A stretch of 64,000 nucleotides of DNA, from NCBI GenBank assembly GCA_020891255.1, contig BQFW01000010.1:62001-126000 (forward strand), given 5' to 3'. Under the pieces are notes generated by a model. It ran no database searches. It worked only from the letters and a program-made list of their open reading frames with translations, and was not told where the DNA came from. The position numbers and the translations under genes are program-made. Of this stretch, positions 44,624 to 53,456 are shown piece after piece (within the stretch, counting starts at the first letter, position 1; each line of letters opens with the position of its first letter). The stretch is from Entomortierella parvispora E1425 (lineage: Eukaryota; Fungi; Mortierellomycota).

Positions 44624-45187
44624 ATTTCGTGGATGCTTACCCATCCTCGTTCATATCGGTAATAAAATCCATATCGAAGTTCAATGGTGGAGGACCAAAC
44701 ATGGCTCTATGATGCTGTATTTTCAATGATTTTACGTCTATGGTGCAAGTCATCTAGTCCCGACAAGAATATCTCCAAGTGCAATAACTTTTGAAGGAGC
44801 CATCATGATGTCTAGAATTTTTCATAACTGTGAGCCTCACAACACAACAAATAAAACTATGTTTTCCTTCCGGTGGAAAGACCTGTGGGAGAAGAGCCAT
44901 GGGCACCGTGGCGGAGCGTTGCAGAGACCCTTAAAGCCTTAAGCGTGTCATGTGACGACTGACGTGAGTTCGGATTCCGTCCTCTGGTCGTGGGCGTTGT
45001 CCGGACATCCTTCTTCTTGCAGTGCTCAGATGGTGGTTGATTCTTTACCTAGTCTCTCTAAGTTCCTCTCTTCCTCTCTCGCCTTCTTCTCAATGGAATT
45101 AGATATCCAGACGAGCGGCGACGACGAAGCAAAAAAGTGTACAAATGAAGACACCCTTCCAATTTTTTTTAAATTATTGACAAAGGG

Positions 45188-46386
45188 TGTGTACAACGCA
45201 TGCTTCTGCACCCAGAGCCGCGTCGCTCTCTTCCTGTTAGAAGAGAACCCGAGGTCAAGGGTCGCCTCAAGACAATAAAAATTTACTACTTCCTATCTTC
45301 TCCATCACTGCTGGCCAATGCCGGCCAAGATATGTGTCCAGCAGAAAGATATCCGCTTCGATGTTCTCGCCTGTAAATCTTGGGCACTTGTTGTTCGTGT
45401 GTTTGTCCATCACTTGGCCGCAGTCGCACTCATCCTCTGCTGGTGTTGCGCCCACCCATGTTCTCCATGCAGTGGTCGGTTCTCCGGGTTGTTTCAGTGG
45501 GGGAAATTCCGTCTGTTCTTTTTCCATCGCTATTTGCCTCCGATCCAGCCAAACTGCCTCTCGGGTGCTGCCCTCAAGTGCTCGGCAGAACCGGTGAGCT
45601 ATATTTTGGTCTGTTGTGATGTTGGTCTTGAAGAGTTGGCCCTATACTTGGGCGAGACTGTGGGGTGAGATCCTACGGTAGAGATCTGCCACAGGTCATT
45701 GGCGTAGGGTCTTCTCTGTTGTTGTACGAGCTGGCTTGCTTACATCCCAAGGTGCAGGATCGACCACGCCTGATATGTGCTCCAATGATGTCCATATGGC
45801 ACGGTCGCCTAGCGTCGTCAGTTTAGGTGCTTTTCTGTTAAAAGGCTCTTGCTTCTGTTGGTGGAGGTCTCGTTCTTCAGCCCACACCCGTCTTAAAAGT
45901 ACCTCCTTCAGATGTGTCCATTTCGCCATGGTTTCTAGTGTCCGGCGCCAGACCTTCTGCTCGTCTGCAAGATGTGGTTTACAGTTCCAAAGGTGTTCAT
46001 TGCTTTCTTCCTGGTCCTGGCATCAGGGGCATAGGGCTGGGGGGTAGATATATGGTCGCCAGTGGTGTTGAATGTCTTGTCTTGGGAGGACTCCATGGAG
46101 CTTTTTAGCCCGACGCCCGCGCAGCGAGGGGTCTCTTGGACTGGTATAAAAGGATCCGGTGTTGTTGTTGTTGTGCACATTGTCCAGTGTGGACTTCCAG
46201 TGGATATAGTCGCTGTCTAGGCCCGTCTTTTTGGTTTGCTTGAGCGCCAATCATGCACAATGATCCCTGATATATGACTGATGTCGAACAAGACGACGAA
46301 CATCGGTATCAACGTTCGTTCGCAGGAATTGTGCGCCAAAGTAGAAGTCCTGTTGATTCGATTGATTGATTGTCCATGGTACGTTG
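45188..46386 (-). mobile_element. 5'-truncated, decayed non-LTR retrotransposon (LINE ORF2 C-terminus with zf-RVT)
   Basis: One frame reads DTDVRRLVRHQSYIR...IHWKSTL...RAKKLHGVLPRQDIQHHWRPYIYPPALCP*CQDQEESNEHLWNC (zf-RVT CCHC motif with a stop at 46023-46025). It continues to REAVWLDRRQ and ends at 45267. The RT core is absent. Confidence 0.8.
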
Positions 46387-46587
46387 TGAAGACACCCTTC
46401 CAACTTCTTTTTTTTATTGACAAGGGGCCTGGAGAGACACCTTCCAACTTCGCGTCCCCCAAATCAATTTATGTCTCGGTGGCTTAGGCGTAAGCCGAAT
46501 CCACGACCTTCAGTTTTTGACTCTTCACCATTGTTGACCGATTGCTGACTCGTTCATTGACCAACTGATCCCAGTTCATCCCTAACA

Positions 46588-49500
46588 ATGACATTCACGC
46601 TTGACGTCGTGGCGCGCCCTGGGACCGATCCGCCACACGACTTTTCTCGCCTCGTCGAGAGTCATCAGTGCTCGTGGTCACAACCATCCGCCAACTTTAT
46701 GCATATTCTCGAAAATGCATCCAAGGACCCAAGGATCCAGTCTTGTGGCGAAAAGGCGGAAAAGGCTTTGTGGGCTCTTCGCAACCATGGGCTCCGTGCG
46801 GATCCTCACCCCGTAGACCCTAGGAGTTCAGTGGCTCATTTTATTACCCAGAATTTCTTGCAGCCACGCGGTAAATTCGACCTGCAGCTATCAGTCAACA
46901 GCAGCGACAACCCAGTTTTATCAGGACTCCCAACGAGAACGCAGCTCCTGTTCGTGTTTCTTGCAGAACGGCTCAACTGCAAAATCTTCTTATTTTCCAG
47001 TCGAGGAAAACCCAGAGTCTATTGTCCAACAAGAGAAGGCCCGTCTCAACCGCGAGTTTGTGGATTTTTCCACAGAGTGGACTCATTTCTGAAATTCTCG
47101 GAATATCTAGTCCTTGTGCCTATCGACAATTTCATCCTTACTCCTATGGACCAGGTGGTGGGCGATTTAGTGGTGGCTCCTGTGAGTGAGCTGGTTCCGT
47201 CTTCCGTTAACCACTCGTCTCCTGTTGACACCGTTTCATCACCTACCAATGCTGCCACGTTCCGGGCGAACAAACGAAAGATCCACTATGGGAAAGGGCC
47301 GGACGATAATATGAAGGCTGAATTACTTGTTTGCTTTGAGGAGTCATGGTAAGGTTGATATTCAAGTCTGTATTGATCAAGAACTCGTAAACGAGGACTT
47401 TTGTTGATGATTTTCTGCTTCCTTAGTTATAAGCATTTGGAAGTGAAAATACAGGAGCATATTGGCAAGCTGAACGACAGCAAAAATAAGGAAGTGGAGG
47501 GAAAACAGGAGTTCAAGCAACGACTATTGAACCAAAAGAGTTTACCAAAAGGTCCTCTTGTGGATGCCGCCGACATCTACATCAATCGCAATGACCACCC
47601 AATGAAACGTAGCAAGGTGACTTCTGACATTACTACAGCAACCAACAAGAACAACCTACGAATATGGTGCAACGTTGTGGAAGCAAAATTCGACAACATA
47701 TGGGAAGAATGCGAGAAAAATTTGGGAACCATTCAAGCGGAACCTGACAAAGGAAAGAAACGAAAGGGATCCAATCCGGATGAAGGCGGAGAGCCCAAGA
47801 CACCTATTGCAGGCGAGGATGAGGAGAATGATGACGACTGGCGTACGTGCACGGTGACTTTGAAGCAGATTCTTCATCCAAGCCTTTCAAATGACGAGGA
47901 CTACGGCAGAATCCTTAAGCTTCTTCATGAGGCACAGGCGCACGTCACCGACGTTGAGCGATCGCTATATCTCTTGGCACAGATCGGAACGATCTTGGTA
48001 AGTCGACATTCAACGGCCATCGAGATCGTCAGCTGGTGAGCTCCCTTCATCAGCTGCTATAGTTGCAGACAATTGATGCTTTTTTTTTATTGTTGTTGTT
48101 TCCAGGCAGGAGCCGGTGCCTGTATGGGGCAAGACAGCACTTTAGATTTGACCAACGTTCTCCCGCCAGGGTACATCGTTTCCCCAGAACAGAGGATTAT
48201 CCACGTCGCACCAGTCGCAACACAACAGGCTGGCATTGAAAACAAGAACTCTGGCATGCACAGCGACATCCGAAACCTCCTTTCCCAGAATCATCTAAGT
48301 AATATGCACACAGTATTCAAGGAGAATGGAGACGGCCGCAAGGGCAAACTTCTTGCTAAGAGCGGCGACGGCCATCCAAAGTGGCGTGAGTTGTCGACAA
48401 TCATCGACAACAAAGTGCCAGGTGTTACTATTCCCTACAAGGATGGGTTCTCATCAGTTGTCGAGGCGCACACTCGCCAATGCTCTACAGCAATCAAGAA
48501 TCTGTGGGAAGGCAACGTGTATGAAAAGGCACTTGACTATCTACTCCGTTACCTTTTGTCGGCATGGTTGGCTCCGAACCGGGCAGCGGCGCACAAGGAG
48601 CGAAAGATTAAGGCTGTCAAAAATAAGGAGGAAAAAAAAAGCGGCGAAGGACGCCATTCCAGACAGTCTTAGTCGATCCCAATGGCGTCACGCAATGTCC
48701 AGGCTGATGGATAACATTGCCCGATACCATTCCAATGGCCGCCTGGATCAACTCCAGCATTTTGTGGTTCCACTCCTGCGGCTCTATGCCAAAAAGCCTC
48801 TCCCAGCTGATGCAAACGCCAGCAAATCCTTCCAGAAACTTTCGGAAACTCAGCTCTCTGGGACAGGTCTAGGCAATGCTGGCGATCCAGAGGATGTATT
48901 GCCCGATGACGATCCAGAGGATTTATTCGCCGATGACGATCTTGACTTGTGTCTTTTCGAGAGTCAGGACTTCCTGAACGAACTTGACGGCGGGTTTATG
49001 ATGGAAACAGAAATATCATGCGGTGAAAATCAAAATGCTTCCGGACCAGAAGAGAAAGAGAAGGAGCCGAGCCGCCGAACGCTTCGCAGTCTGCAAGCAA
49101 TCGTTAAAACCTTGCTTGAATCACCGCTACCCTGCTCGACTTTCACCATGACCCACATCAAAGACACTGTTTACAAGGGCACATCTTTTACGGAGAATCA
49201 GCTCATGGTCGCCCAGAAGATCATCAACGCCCTCCGTCCCTATGTCCCTCGCCGATGGAGGAACGCGCAGGACGATGACTACCGCCCACACACTCCACAC
49301 ATTGTCCTTCGCGCTCCAATAGTGCTTATATCGAACGCCATCCTACGTCTTTTAGGTCAGGTTGAATTCACTCGACGATTGTCTCCTGTCATATCTTCAG
49401 GAAAACTGCACGGCTTGCACTTGGGCGCTCGCCACATATACGAGGTGCTCAGTGGCCCCATGGGTGGACGGTATGATATCAACGGCGACCTTGGCATTAT

Positions 49501-51669
49501 AACAAATGTAACAGACTGCGTTGGATCCTTGATGGCAAAAAGGGCAGTCTTTGCAAATTTTTTTGATATCGACAAAATCGACGCCATATGCAAGAAGCAC
49601 GGATTTCAATTTGGAACGAGGTAATTTATGTTGCAACTATCCCTTGTTTCAGCTGAAGTAGTTCACAGTTGCTCATAGCAAGACTAACGATGTTATGGTA
49701 AAATATTTTAGAATGTCCTTCGTCGATGAGTTTACTCTAAACATGTCCGGGCCCCAGATCGGAGATACTCGATATCCAATAAGGAGCGCCTTCGATGATA
49801 ATAGGAAAGCTAGTAAGGGCCTATCAAACGGGAAGACTGCACGTTGGCGTATTGAATTTGAGCGGAGTGGTCTTTCCAAGGGCGACGTGGAGCATCAGGT
49901 GGAGATAGCCAAAGCAAGCGTTGAAATGAAAGCCAAGGAGCGGGAAGGCCCTCGTAAGGAGATCGTTTCTCTTCGGCGAGACTGTAACCAACTCAACAGC
50001 AACATCAGAGCCTTGCCTAGGAGTTACAGCAACGGTGGCAGTGAAGGTGACGGCCACAAAAACCAATTAATGTTGGATCTCAAGGTTAAGCAGGCCACGC
50101 TCAGAAAGAAAGAAGGGAGGTTCCGGCAACTTGATGATGCGTGGGAGCGATCAAAAAAAGCGCTCTACTATTGGAACCGACTTTTGGCAATGTCGAAGAA
50201 AAAGGCACCAAAGGACAACCCAAAGAAGAGAGCCAAGGCCAGCGCAAACAAGACTCTTCAGATTTCTCCAAGGTGGGATCGGCCGCAAGCAGAGGACGTT
50301 CCGCAGCGCCTGGATCTTGATCCATTATTTGAGCACCATCTTAAACCGTGTCCCATTTCAAAGCGGACCCAGGTAGTGGCCATCTTGGCCGAAGATCCGG
50401 GTGTGAGAGTGATGTCAGAGAATGTTTTTCTGACCGTGGAGGGAATACGCGAATCAGTCAACAGATTTCAGCTACTGGCAGGTGAGTCTCATCATACGTG
50501 ACAGGCATGGATTTCAATACTATTGAACACAGTTCTAATTTTATGTGTCTATAGACCTCAATGAGCCAGAGCCAGAGGAGGCCCAGGCTGAGCCGGAGGA
50601 TACAGTTCCAGTGGCGTGGACAATGGAGCAGCGTGTACATACCAAAAAGGCTGTACAGGGTATGAAACTGCCCAAGGCTCATCGGATAACAGCACGCCAG
50701 GTTGACGATATCTCATTTGCACGAAAACTTCGCAAAAAACGAGAGCAGTTGCTCAGATCAGACAAGCACAGGCAGGCAAAGGCTGATCTACAAATGCTTT
50801 CGGACCCGGATTCATCTCTCGCCACAGCCTCCACAATCGACCGTGTCCAGCAAGCCATGAACGTTCGCGGATCAATTGAAGGACTGAGTGCTCACCTGCA
50901 GGCTCTTAATGGAGATCCCGAGCTTATCAAGCTTCGTCGAACTTGTAGACACCGGACAGTGAGATCTTGGGCCAAAGTCACCAGTAATCTGCGTTCCAGA
51001 TCCGCAGAATATACGATCAACAGACTGGCTGAAGACATGCGTGGCGAACCATGTGTGGACAAATCTACAGGCTATTGCTCCAATTGCGAGCGCGTCGAAA
51101 TATCCAAGTCCCGTATACCAGCTCCATACAGCCACCCCTCCTATTGTGTGAAGACTACCCCAGTCGTTCGCCATGTAATATTCATGGGCGCCGCCGGTAC
51201 TGGTGTGGGGTCTAGAATTGGTGGGCATTACCGCCTAGGAGGCAAGAATATCAGGAAACAACATCGCCAGGTTGGAACCGTGGTTGTTACTGATGAGTAC
51301 ATGTCGACCCAACGTTGCTGCTTCTGCTTTAAGAAAACTCACTCGGCACGCTCAAGGAGATTAGTCACAACTGATAAGGGAAAGACGGTCAACACCGTAC
51401 TAGTGAACGGGTCAAAAGAGTGCGACAACACGGCATGCCCTGCGTTCAAGAATGGCTATACAACTCGACCTCGGGACACGCAAGCATGCGTGTGCATTGG
51501 CATATCGGGGTTTTCTGCAATTCAAGATCAAGAAAGAATCCCTTTAGCACCATTTCGTCCACACCTTGAACCGTGTGAACACGATCAACACCAGCAAGAC
51601 GCTGGAATCCAAACTCGTAGTTCAACCCGAGGCGGGTCAAGGGCTACTCCCGGAAAAGGGCTACATTGA
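46588..51669 (+). CDS. Giant Fanzor1-type (TnpB/OMEGA-family) RuvC endonuclease, 5 exons, one +1 frameshift
   Basis: Exons 46588-47348, 47427-47997, 48106-49620, 49712-50481, 50555-51669 (all GT-AG, phases compatible). RuvC-I VAILAEDPG (D 50394), GAAGTGVGSRIGGHYRLGG, RuvC-II VVTDEYMSTQRCCFC (E 51295), Zn finger CDNTAC, RuvC-III RDTQACVCI (D 51475). Frame break at A9 48632-48640. Confidence 0.88.
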
Positions 51670-51700
51670 GGTAAACTTGGTTCGCTTCAATCCAGAATTG
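51570..51700 (+). ncRNA. Candidate omegaRNA scaffold/guide overlapping the Fanzor 3' end
   Basis: Successive hairpins cgtg-tgaa-cacg (51572-51583), ccagc-aagac-gctgg (51591-51605), acccg-agg-cgggt (51625-51637) and ccc-ggaaaa-ggg (51649-51660). Position expected by analogy to TnpB/Fanzor; no expression evidence. Confidence 0.35.
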
Positions 51701-51759
51701 TAAACACTGATACTAATCACGTGATATTGTGTTTTGGTGACAGGCATTGTATTAAGTAT

Positions 51760-53456
51760 TTACACGGAAAGCTCGAAATATTGATGATCGTGTCCGGTGC
51801 TTTTCATGATCCTCATGGCGACCAGCGCCCGTGTTGACATTGCCCAGACGCGATGCACACCATGCCTTGCCACCAGACGTCCCATCCTTGTCGTGATCAG
51901 CCAAACCAACGCTGTCAACAGAACGAACAGGATCAAGCTTGCATAGGGATAAAATGCCACGATCCAAGTTGGGTAATAAAATTTGTGGAACCTGCACGTC
52001 TTGTCCACGCCCAATCGTTTGATCTTCATTCCCGTTGTGTGGCTCCCGTCCGTTGGAGGCAGAGTCAGTGGTAGTTTCTTGATGCCCTCGGTCAGATCGT
52101 GGACTTCTCGACAAAGAGCACACATTCCTCCATGGTAGTCGGGTCCCCATTGCATCCCGTACTTTTCTCTGGAGGGGACATCACTCGCCCGAACCTTGCC
52201 CCTGTTGGGGCCAGTCCCATGGGTCAGCCATTCTGTTGTCGTCTTATTGAGCGATCCAGTCGTGTCCAGATCCCAGTTATCCACAAACCAGGGGAGTAGC
52301 CGGTCTTTGTAGTCCTGATTAAACGTCTCTGGTTCGCTGATCCGTACGTGTCCATTGCTGTCTGTGTTGGCCGCATTCTTTTTTGCTCGATACGACAGAT
52401 ATTCCTCGTACGCCCCGTCATCCTGATCTAACCGCCTCAAGAACGCAGCCAAGGCCTGAGGGGATCCAAAATCGTCATAGACAATCAAGGATTTCGCGGC
52501 TGGTTGAAGGCGCGAGTAATCCTTGGGGCCATCCACGATCGGAACCGACCCGACGGCGAGGGGTCTCCAAAGCTTTTCCGTGATATAGTCCTCACAATTG
52601 GTGTTTTCGAGCGCGAGATAAAACTTGTAGTGCGAGACCAGTTCCTCATCCGACATTTCCTTGGCAGAGTCGTCCTCGCTGTCCGGGGTATTAATATTAA
52701 TATTAATATTATTATTATTATTGGAGGTGGACGCTTGCTTGGGCCATGCTCGACTGGGAATGCAGTGGCCATAAATGTCCACAGGGATATATTTCTGGAG
52801 TTGTTGGACCATAAAGTGCCGACCATTGGTGGCCTCACAGTTGCTGGCGATCCAGGCGACGGGGGCCAGGGGTCGATTGTCCTGAGGATGGAAGCCATGT
52901 TGACGGTATTGATTCTTTTGGGCGAGCGATTTGAAGGCCGGTCGACTGACGAGGTTGATGAGTCCATCGGGGAGGTCGCGTCCGGCTTTGAAGTAGGAGC
53001 CAATAAAGTCGGATCCAAAGTGATAAGTGAACCGGTAGGTGAACAGGTTCATGTAGCGTGCCTGGTAGTGATGCGGGTCTGGTCGCTCGGCTAAGGGATA
53101 GCACAACAACAGAGAAAGGGTTGAGTGAATCCTTCAGAGAACAAGAAAAAAAAGAAGAAAAAAAAAAAAAAAAAAAGAGGACAAACGGCAGAGGATTGGT
53201 TAGTGTGGATGGTGGTGTTTTTCTTACCCTTGTTGAGCACCCAGGCTTTGACGTTGTTCTGCGCGTCCTTGACTGGCGGCAGATCATGGGGGTCCCAGTC
53301 GTGAAAGACGACCACGCGCGAGTCAGCATAACGCGAACGGTCGAGCGTGTGTTTGCATGTGTAGGGCAGTCCGCATTGGTCTGTGACCATGCCTTCGTAG
53401 CGATCCTCGCCAAACCAGCGCGTCCACCACAGGATTGGGTACTCCTTGGAGGTCAT
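51760..53456 (-). CDS. Alpha-(1,3)-fucosyltransferase, glycosyltransferase family 10
   Basis: Exons 53456-53228 and 53090-51760. PILWWT, VVVFH, FTYRF, VAWIASNC, PVDIYGHC and the alpha-1,3-FucT motif YKFYLALENTNCEDYITEKLWR...GSVPIV. Confidence 0.9.

Follow-up and report, generated by a model that had tools for sequence, protein, structure and literature searches.

Fanzors are, to our knowledge, the only known RNA-guided DNA nucleases of eukaryotes, and they are under development as genome editors. The characterised members measure 600-700 residues and reside on transposons with recognisable transposases or terminal inverted repeats (TIRs). In the bacterial IS200/IS605 elements, the pentanucleotide that flanks the element is also the target-adjacent motif (TAM) of the TnpB nuclease. 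The locus described here lies in a 64,000-nucleotide stretch of the soil fungus Entomortierella parvispora E1425 (the window: assembly GCA_020891255.1, contig BQFW01000010.1, positions 62,001-126,000, forward strand). With a probability of roughly three in four, positions 44742-51752 of the window are one copy of a single-gene mobile element of E. parvispora that encodes a Fanzor1-type nuclease of about 1,575 residues, probably guided by RNA.

The SPu-1 element is bounded by 33-bp TIRs and TA target-site duplications (TSDs), neither of which is present in the E. parvispora element. The closer likeness is to IS200/IS605 members such as ISDra2 and IS608. Common to both are the lack of TIRs and TSDs, insertion 3' of a fixed pentanucleotide, a right end in a related pentamer, a nuclease gene that fills the 3' part of the element, a (here predicted) structured RNA over the 3' end of that gene, and transcription past the right end into the flank. 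The two differ in that IS200/IS605 elements carry the Y1 HUH transposase TnpA, whereas the present unit has none (copies acting in trans from elsewhere in the genome were not searched for), and in that the present nuclease is eukaryotic, spliced and four times larger. The likeness lies in the geometry of insertion, not in any observed single-strand "peel and paste" transposition.

E. parvispora carries three copies of the subfamily to which the window element belongs, and a second subfamily at about 59% protein identity with six annotated proteins and at least four full-length loci. The limits of the element and the parts outside its coding region are as follows:

44737-44741, forward strand: TCTAT target motif and candidate TAM, in the host DNA flanking the left end, outside the element
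44742-51752, forward strand: the mobile element, 7,011 bp, without TIR and without TSD, beginning GGTGCAAG and ending GGCATTGTAT
44742-44766, forward strand: left end, 25 nt, GGTGCAAGTCATCTAGTCCCGACAA, identical in the second subfamily
44767-46587, forward strand: 5' non-coding region, including a 1.24-kb unit between 42-nt direct repeats (45146-45187 and 46387-46427)
51716-51752, forward strand: right end, with a CACGTG palindrome, TTTTGGTGACAG and the terminal GCATTGTAT, conserved in the second subfamily
51753-51775, forward strand: right flank, transcribed by read-through from the element; candidate guide or target sequence

The element has been mobile recently, inserts at TCTAT, and carries an expressed, spliced and catalytically conserved Fanzor1 gene. 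Positions 44737-51752 are 98.6-99.5% identical to two loci on two other contigs (L001 and L002), and the flanks of the three are unrelated. In X1, a DNA run made from the sample that was also the source of the genome, read depth over the element reaches about threefold the depth of the flank, and the loose ends lead into the flanks of these three copies only. In X5, another strain under the same species label, a contig joins the left flank of the window copy directly to 51750/51753. This empty site reads ...TTTTACGTCTAT/TAAGTATTT... (the slash marks the junction, ACGTCTAT/TAAG) and contains TCTAT once, and nothing at 88% likeness or more was found in X5 over the element itself.

TCTAT directly precedes the same 25-nt left end in all seven E. 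parvispora insertions examined, of both subfamilies. TGTAT or TGTAC closes the right end, and the flanks beyond it bear no relation to one another, from which it follows that there is neither a TSD nor a TIR; no TIRs, and no paralogs, were found within the window. The 25-nt left end and the TTTTGGTGACAG block of the right end are kept between the subfamilies, the coding DNA of which is about 65% identical. As only about 410 nt separate the left end from the ATG in the second subfamily, the core element consists of the left end, one gene and a tail of about 80 nt. The related elements of Mortierella sp. GBAus27b, present in at least nine near-identical copies, have the left end GGAGCAAGT preceded by TCTATATAATAA or TCTAATAA, with TCTA(T/A) located within 4-7 nt upstream of it in three of three insertions and with no TSD; a strong hairpin is present in these relatives, and CTAG stands two nucleotides short of their right end.

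Two other classifications of the ends were tried and rejected. A 3-bp TAT duplication is contradicted by the second subfamily, in which TCTAT at the left is paired with GTAC at the right. A Helitron or Helitron2 is contradicted by an empty site that keeps TCTAT, an element that starts with GGTGC, a right end in TGTAT, and the lack of RepHel. A search for subterminal hairpins shared by both ends gave, in the first subfamily, CATCATGATG at +60 and ATCACGTGAT at -37, neither of which is kept in the second.

Some further observations concern the ends and the 5' region. L001 (14555-14580) diverges after the position equivalent to 51739 and stops 13 nt short of a full right end; at its junction, TTTTGGTG/CAAGGATCC, the opening 8 nt of the left end, GGTGCAAG, are recreated. 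L002 (5457-6977) has a second 5' unit in tandem, 71% identical, and the second subfamily is without the whole 1.4-kb block. The 1.24-kb unit could be a nested insertion or an expanding promoter module. At the empty site of X5, the 13 nt after TCTAT match the window and are followed by an 18-nt insertion, GCCCGTCTCTCTTCCAGT, behind 51765. The X5 allele would mismatch a guide of 15-20 nt, and could be a resistant allele, or the difference could be a deletion scar in the window strain. In GBAus27b locus L012 (944-2550), the left end, at 1479, lies inside a called gene that matches the Pif1 2B domain, the helicase type of the Helitron RepHel; this may be a chance insertion into another element.

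The gene itself occupies 46588-51669 of the forward strand. It is built from six open reading frame (ORF) pieces that join into five exons, bounded by GT..AG, with the frame kept at every join:

46588-47348, forward strand: exon 1, with the start codon at 46588; N-terminal alpha/beta domain, OTU-like part at about 46744-47127
47349-47426, forward strand: intron 1, 78 nt, GT..AG; joint in an X2 contig
47427-47997, forward strand: exon 2; helical extension with the basic patch KGKKRKG, Fanzor core (WED) from about 47830
47998-48105, forward strand: intron 2, 108 nt; joint in an X2 contig
48106-49620, forward strand: exon 3; WED/REC with insertions
48632-48640, forward strand: run of nine A (A9), frame break in the window copy; A8 in both paralogs
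49621-49711, forward strand: intron 3, 91 nt; joint in an X2 contig
49712-50481, forward strand: exon 4; long coiled-coil hairpin at 49878-50198, RuvC-I EDPG with its D at 50394-50396
50482-50554, forward strand: intron 4, 73 nt, within the RuvC domain; joint in an X2 contig
50555-51669, forward strand: exon 5, RuvC part; helical RuvC insertion, G-rich motif at 51187-51228, RuvC-II E at 51295-51297, RuvC-III D at 51475-51477
51316-51438 and 51667-51669, forward strand: remainder of exon 5; C4 zinc finger and stop codon
51591-51660, forward strand: hairpins, candidate omegaRNA scaffold; CCAGC-N5-GCTGG at 51591-51605, 11-bp stem at 51617-51647, short stem at 51648-51660
51671-51743, forward strand: fifth intron, 73 nt, GT..AG, in the 3' untranslated region (UTR), from 1 nt past the stop codon to 9 nt short of the right end

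With the A9 run bridged, the spliced product has about 1,575 residues, and the 4.7 kb of coding sequence contain no other stop or frameshift. An earlier reading of this DNA from its letters alone (the sequence-only reading) had assembled five exons with canonical splice sites into about 1,575 codons after dropping one extra A; exon bounds, frame and the X2 transcript contig described below agree with it, and the A9 run is indeed the only frame break. Its count of four introns holds for the coding region, where all four are spliced, but overlooked the fifth in the 3' UTR. GenBank annotates only the C-terminal 785 residues, as hypothetical protein EMPS_07264 (GJJ74906.1, here P0001), which is 100% identical to the splice of exons 3b-5. 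The paralog P0152 (EMPS_01913) is 97.4% identical from residue 187 to the end and uninterrupted across the A run; both near-identical paralogous loci have A8 at this site.

Transcription was followed by comparing contigs of four public runs with positions 46400-52399. No run was listed as RNA; run X2, labelled "DNA?", and the genome-like DNA run X1 come from one sample. A single 4,740-nt contig of X2 covers 46589-51671 with all four coding introns precisely removed, and X1 has none of the exon joints. The spliced form is thus RNA and not a retrocopy, and the five exons belong to one transcript, which excludes the possibility, raised with the sequence-only reading, that they are parts of separate transcripts. 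The fifth intron is spliced in X2 contigs 9 and 11, and in contig 11 the spliced 3' end runs on into the private right flank of the window copy. The window copy is therefore itself transcribed, spliced and read through into its flank. At the A run, one A is omitted in the X1 and X2 contigs alike; this is indecisive, as short-read contigs collapse the three copies to their majority sequence. The spliced contig stops at 46589, one base past the A of the start codon, and no 5' UTR was recovered. The ATG at 46588 is probably correct, because the N-terminal residues encoded from there are conserved in relatives. An 11-mer, GTGACAGGCAT, occurs both in intron 4 (50498-50508) and at 51737-51747, over the acceptor of the 3' UTR intron at the right end; this may be chance.

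By every sequence and fold criterion examined, the predicted gene product is a Fanzor1, with the WED-REC-RuvC-TNB fold in its C-terminal 1,200 residues. The published Fanzor1 motif, D-X(125,275)-[TS]-[TS]-X-X-[C4 zinc finger]-X(5,50)-RD (Bao and Jurka 2013, PMC3627910), is found in P0001 as D386, S665-T666-Q-R-C669xxC672, C704xxxxC709, then 11 residues and R721-D722. The spacing from D to [TS] is 278, three above the published upper bound, the overshoot being due to the insertion in RuvC. Fanzor1 proteins are further marked by a DPG at RuvC-I and by a rearranged RuvC-II glutamate located six residues before the first CxxC (Yoon 2023, PMC10711439; Jiang 2023, PMC10530073); P0001 has EDPG at 385-388 and E662-YMSTQR-C669. 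The G and E that are conserved specifically in Fanzor1 and lie 36 residues apart (G500 and E536 of SPu-1-1p) correspond to G626 and E662, again 36 residues apart, with G kept in 39 of 40 relatives and E in 40 of 41. Across the family, the three acidic residues are kept in 26 of 28 (D), 40 of 41 (E) and 37 of 38 (D) sequences; the four zinc-finger cysteines are each covered by 37-39 sequences and present in at least 35 of these. The sequence-only reading had placed the three acidic codons exactly (in EDPG, TDEY and PRD); the GSRIGGH motif, which it also named, lies at 51208-51228, and the cysteine codons of the CxxC...CxxxxC zinc finger lie at 51316, 51325, 51421 and 51436.

Profile and structure comparisons point the same way. 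The language-model features of exon 5 are at 0.96 to PF07282/Cas12f1-like TNB clusters from Mucoromycota, Zoopagomycota and giant viruses. A family profile made from 41 relatives has as its first PDB matches SpuFz1 (E 0.01) and PpFz1 (E 0.063), in an alignment that covers DEyxTSxxCxxC, hGxxxCxNpxC and RD; a phmmer search of exon 5 alone against PDB sequences gave only spurious eS19 matches. The AlphaFold model of P0001 (pLDDT, the score of a predicted local distance difference test, 78.7) has SpuFz1 as its top Foldseek match (E 5e-4), with residues 85-751 aligned to SpuFz1 271-633 at Z 13.4, followed by PpFz1, GtFz1 and Cas12 proteins. The model of the first 1,000 residues of P0168, an intact paralog of 59% identity (pLDDT 73.2), aligns residues 376-965 to SpuFz1 18-482 at Z 14.0. 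In a search independent of Foldseek over 48,161 chains, only Fanzor, TnpB and Cas12 proteins score above Z 8, with ApmFz2 (Z 8.2-8.3) and ISDra2 TnpB (Z 8.1) below SpuFz1. The check by AlphaFold and Foldseek that had been proposed for the Fanzor assignment thus gave SpuFz1 as the best match for both halves.

The two models jointly span the whole SpuFz1 chain, so the Fanzor core would extend over residues 385-1542 or so, about 1,170 residues compared to about 615 in SpuFz1. The RuvC region of the model superposes on that of SpuFz1 over 252 residues with a root-mean-square deviation of 5.0, and E and D align to the SpuFz1 E and D606 in the profile alignment. With the Fanzor1 proteins of known structure (SpuFz1, 8GKH and 9CEY; PpFz1, 9CF0; GtFz1, 9CER) the predicted protein has in common the WED-REC-RuvC-TNB order, the DPG of RuvC-I, the rearranged E with a G 36 residues before it, a zinc finger with hG..C.Np.C as its second half, and a RuvC-III with RD. 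Introns and patches resembling nuclear localisation signals (NLSs), as reported for Fanzors (PMC10530073), are also shared; the latter are FRANKRK and KGKKRKG.

The protein departs from these relatives in its mass. Most Fanzor1 proteins have 600-700 residues, and the 100-residue RuvC insertion of PpFz1 is a notable exception (Xu et al. 2024, PMC11423790); the present one is about 2.5 times the usual size, so that "roughly twice", as first estimated, was if anything conservative. The added domains that had been suspected consist of an N-terminal extension of about 375 residues with an OTU-like domain, together with insertions in REC (a long acidic disordered insert and a coiled-coil hairpin of about 100 residues) and in RuvC, where a helical insertion puts about 240 residues between RuvC-I and the G motif.

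We lean towards an OTU-like fold for the alpha/beta domain that residues 1 to about 180 make up in the model, the part at 53-175 being weakly OTU-like: it has VIA Z scores of 4.9-5.3 to Otu2 and OTUD3, several Foldseek OTU matches with probabilities up to 0.66, an OTU cluster of the ESM-Atlas at TM 0.52 over 114 residues, and language-model features at 0.87 to OTU clusters. No OTU protein was found in the PDB by a family profile of the N-terminal domain, which gave only a spurious P450 match, and Pfam gave no OTU. Across the family, S, T, D or P takes the position of the would-be catalytic cysteine, and the candidate histidine (FHRVDS) is replaced in about one third of the aligned relatives. 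The domain is probably an OTU-fold pseudo-enzyme. No HUH motif was found in it, and no XPG, FEN1 or PIN domain was detectable in the protein or its long relatives.

The helical module that follows, at about 240-355, is shared with large Fanzor-like proteins of Mucorales (AlphaFold DB, E 1e-23 from residue 200 or so). A0A1X2GGQ0, A0A168HZD0 and A0A077X2E7, the last named "Cas12f1-like TNB domain-containing protein", have in common with the present protein the fold of residues 200-1000, approximately (E 1e-23 to 1e-17), including the helical module before the Fanzor core. They are shorter (609-1,154 residues), and as the matches begin only near residue 200, the sharing does not extend to the OTU-like domain.

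The gene may encode more than protein at its 3' end. The last 50 codons specify a disordered tail (pLDDT below 50), yet are conserved at the nucleotide level across genera. RNAalifold predicts a hairpin at 51617-51647; eight of 24 predicted pairs show compensatory changes among four lineages, and the second subfamily independently yields the same predicted fold. The stem CCAGC-N5-8-GCTGG is made of identical codons in all lineages, and it retains a C as the first base of one codon while the amino acid there varies (Q, P, L, R). Four of five lineages have a splice donor immediately behind the stop codon (TGAG/GTAAAC, TAG/GTATGT, TAG/GTAAGC and TAG/GTATTG), being kept in Mortierella sp. GBAus27b, M. 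alpina and Actinomortierella ambigua; the second subfamily has an alternative GTAAAC. Splicing places the conserved hairpins within 32 nt of the flank. The scaffold of the SpuFz1 and PpFz1 omegaRNAs occupies 75-90 nt upstream of the guide, and the omegaRNA precursor here could be RNA that has been spliced or RNA that has not. In GBAus27b, the 163-nt post-stop tail (L004/L005, 13184-13346) is very stable (z -3.96); it has a long hairpin inside the post-stop intron and, at a distance of 32 nt from the right end, a 7-bp GC-rich hairpin with CTAG after it.

A tentative idea, which we consider rather doubtful, is that the post-stop intron acts as a switch between spliced mRNA and unspliced omegaRNA precursor, as a spliceosomal counterpart of the conflict in IStrons. 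As described by Zedaveinyte et al. (bioRxiv 10.1101/2023.11.20.567912), the bacterial IStrons combine a group I intron with TnpB, and the intron overlaps the 3' end that encodes the guide RNA. The overlap of intron and guide-RNA 3' end would be common to both, so that splicing and guide-RNA production could, we infer, compete; the present intron differs in being spliceosomal, located in the 3' UTR and 73 nt long.

By analogy with TnpB and other Fanzors, the life of the element may be pictured as follows. An omegaRNA comprising the 3' end of the gene and the adjoining flank would guide the nuclease to element-free sites consisting of TCTAT and that flank. The break would then be repaired from a filled copy, by which the element would be kept or spread. 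The window copy may be inactive through its extra A, the paralogs being intact at that position. An intact paralog of the EMPS_06064 type has 1,580 residues.

Several results weigh against the interpretation as an RNA-guided Fanzor1 element or narrow it. None of the six ORF pieces reached the threshold of any Pfam or NCBIfam model. The placement of the three acidic residues in one RuvC site is a prediction from superposition and profile alignment. The 4,740-nt contig tracks the majority sequence of the three near-identical copies, and of the RNA evidence only the 3' junction is specific to the window copy; the window copy has the frame-breaking A9 and 16 private substitutions. As to the candidate omegaRNA, the covariation comes from four lineages only and the hairpins overlap a conserved peptide tail, the interval that matches the SpuFz1/PpFz1 scaffold is here mostly spliceosomal intron, the region of the 3' UTR intron shows no advantage in folding over shuffled sequences (z -0.47 and +1.5), and Rfam gave no match. 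Finally, neither the ORF list nor Pfam nor NCBIfam shows a transposase or any other ORF or domain in the unit, as the sequence-only reading had stated for its surroundings, so that nothing encoded in the unit accounts for insertion at new sites.

On this last point, a slightly better than even chance is given to the element being a non-autonomous passenger, mobilised in trans by a transposase with its gene at another place in the genome, the Fanzor only aiding retention of the element. Such a passenger would rival the proposed explanation only in how the element moves and is otherwise compatible with it; an IS200/IS605-like Y1 enzyme, a Helitron2-like RepHel or a Crypton/IS607-like recombinase acting at a T[C/G]TAT core would be the candidates. 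It agrees with the single ORF, with termini conserved far above the interior, with TSD-less, motif-specific insertion, and with the relation between the TCTAT of the left flank and the terminal TGTAT/TGTAC as pentamers, and it has precedent, as Fanzor1 genes commonly occur on elements of other superfamilies that have no transposase of their own (Bao and Jurka 2013, PMC3627910). No such transposase has been identified, though no whole-genome search was made; moreover, the subterminal hairpins common to both ends are unconvincing, and the Helitron rules (5'-TC/CTRR-3' and insertion between A and T) misfit the E. parvispora ends and the empty site. That the giant Fanzor is instead the only protein of an autonomous element, its N-terminal extension and its REC and RuvC insertions supplying excision and integration at TCTAT, is unlikely, and less likely than the intron switch; if true, one RNA-guided protein would move a TIR-less, TSD-less element in a eukaryote.

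The remaining alternatives concern the state and the role of the gene. The chance that the window gene is a dead relic, a pseudogene of which only the paralogs matter, lies a little under even. The A9 break compared to A8 in both paralogs, the 16 further private substitutions (private SNPs near the run stand at 48335 and 49035) and an annotation limited to 785 residues all fit a relic, but no other stop or frameshift interrupts the 4.7 kb, and the 3' end of this very copy is transcribed and spliced into its private flank. Long-read assemblies err most often in the length of homopolymers, of which the A run is one, and the collapsed short-read contigs allow no decision on it. A function other than cutting, either as an RNA-guided regulator like TldR or through the N-terminal half, is improbable. 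The much altered architecture, the OTU-like pseudo-enzyme domain and the fact that nuclease activity of the giant Fanzor is predicted from sequence and models would be in keeping with it. Nuclease-dead derivatives of TnpB, however, lose the catalytic D/E/D and zinc-finger residues, which are nearly invariant here over 40 relatives, and the gene is still part of a mobile unit. The sequence-only reading had also considered a domesticated gene, and a host gene that has lost its mobility could indeed be suspected from the very large protein with added domains, the host-like introns and the lack of a transposase alongside. That reading had overlooked the 7-kb repeat, in which the gene is the cargo of a multi-copy, strain-polymorphic element with conserved termini. 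Domestication is contradicted, and made very improbable, by the three copies, which are 98.6-99.5% identical yet lie on different contigs between unrelated flanks, by the further copies of the second subfamily and of GBAus27b, by the orthologous empty site in X5 and by the conserved terminal sequences.

The element lies among ordinary fungal genes, which encode a nicotinate phosphoribosyltransferase (NAPRTase), a leucine-rich repeat protein, a convergent GT10 fucosyltransferase (51760-53106, reverse strand) and a PH-domain protein. The fucosyltransferase ORF, at 51760-53109, ends 8 nt from the right end of the element, which is therefore located in or right at the 3' UTR of that gene, so that the two transcripts overlap.

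An exhaustive HMMER search returned 344 relatives. The long ones, of 1,445-1,823 residues, align from end to end and come from six Mortierellomycota genera; full-length relatives were found in Mortierella alpina, Mortierella spp., M. antarctica, Actinomortierella ambigua, Gryganskiella, Benniella and Lunasporangiospora. Relative P0007 aligns over residues 11-1574 at 31% identity, so the architecture as a whole is conserved. In the literature searched, no mention was found of Mortierellomycota Fanzors, of giant Fanzors or of an OTU fusion, although large surveys may contain these accessions; the Saito supplement has one Mortierella Fanzor, of 677 residues, which is unrelated to the present family. 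The giant-Fanzor family is thus without description in that literature, and the post-stop intron, the 3' hairpins and the OTU-like N-terminus lacking the catalytic cysteine are new features.

In these fungi, Fanzor1 has been rebuilt into proteins of 1,445-1,823 residues in which the nuclease site is still under selection. The giant Fanzor gene is the sole cargo of an element with an insertion geometry like that of bacterial IS200/IS605 and unlike that of any eukaryotic superfamily, and a spliceosomal intron has become fixed exactly at the place where the guide RNA is expected. E. parvispora can be cultured, has filled and empty alleles and expresses intact paralogs, and is thus a tractable natural system, which could show what a Fanzor does for its element in vivo, how mRNA and omegaRNA are kept apart in a eukaryote, and what the added domains contribute.

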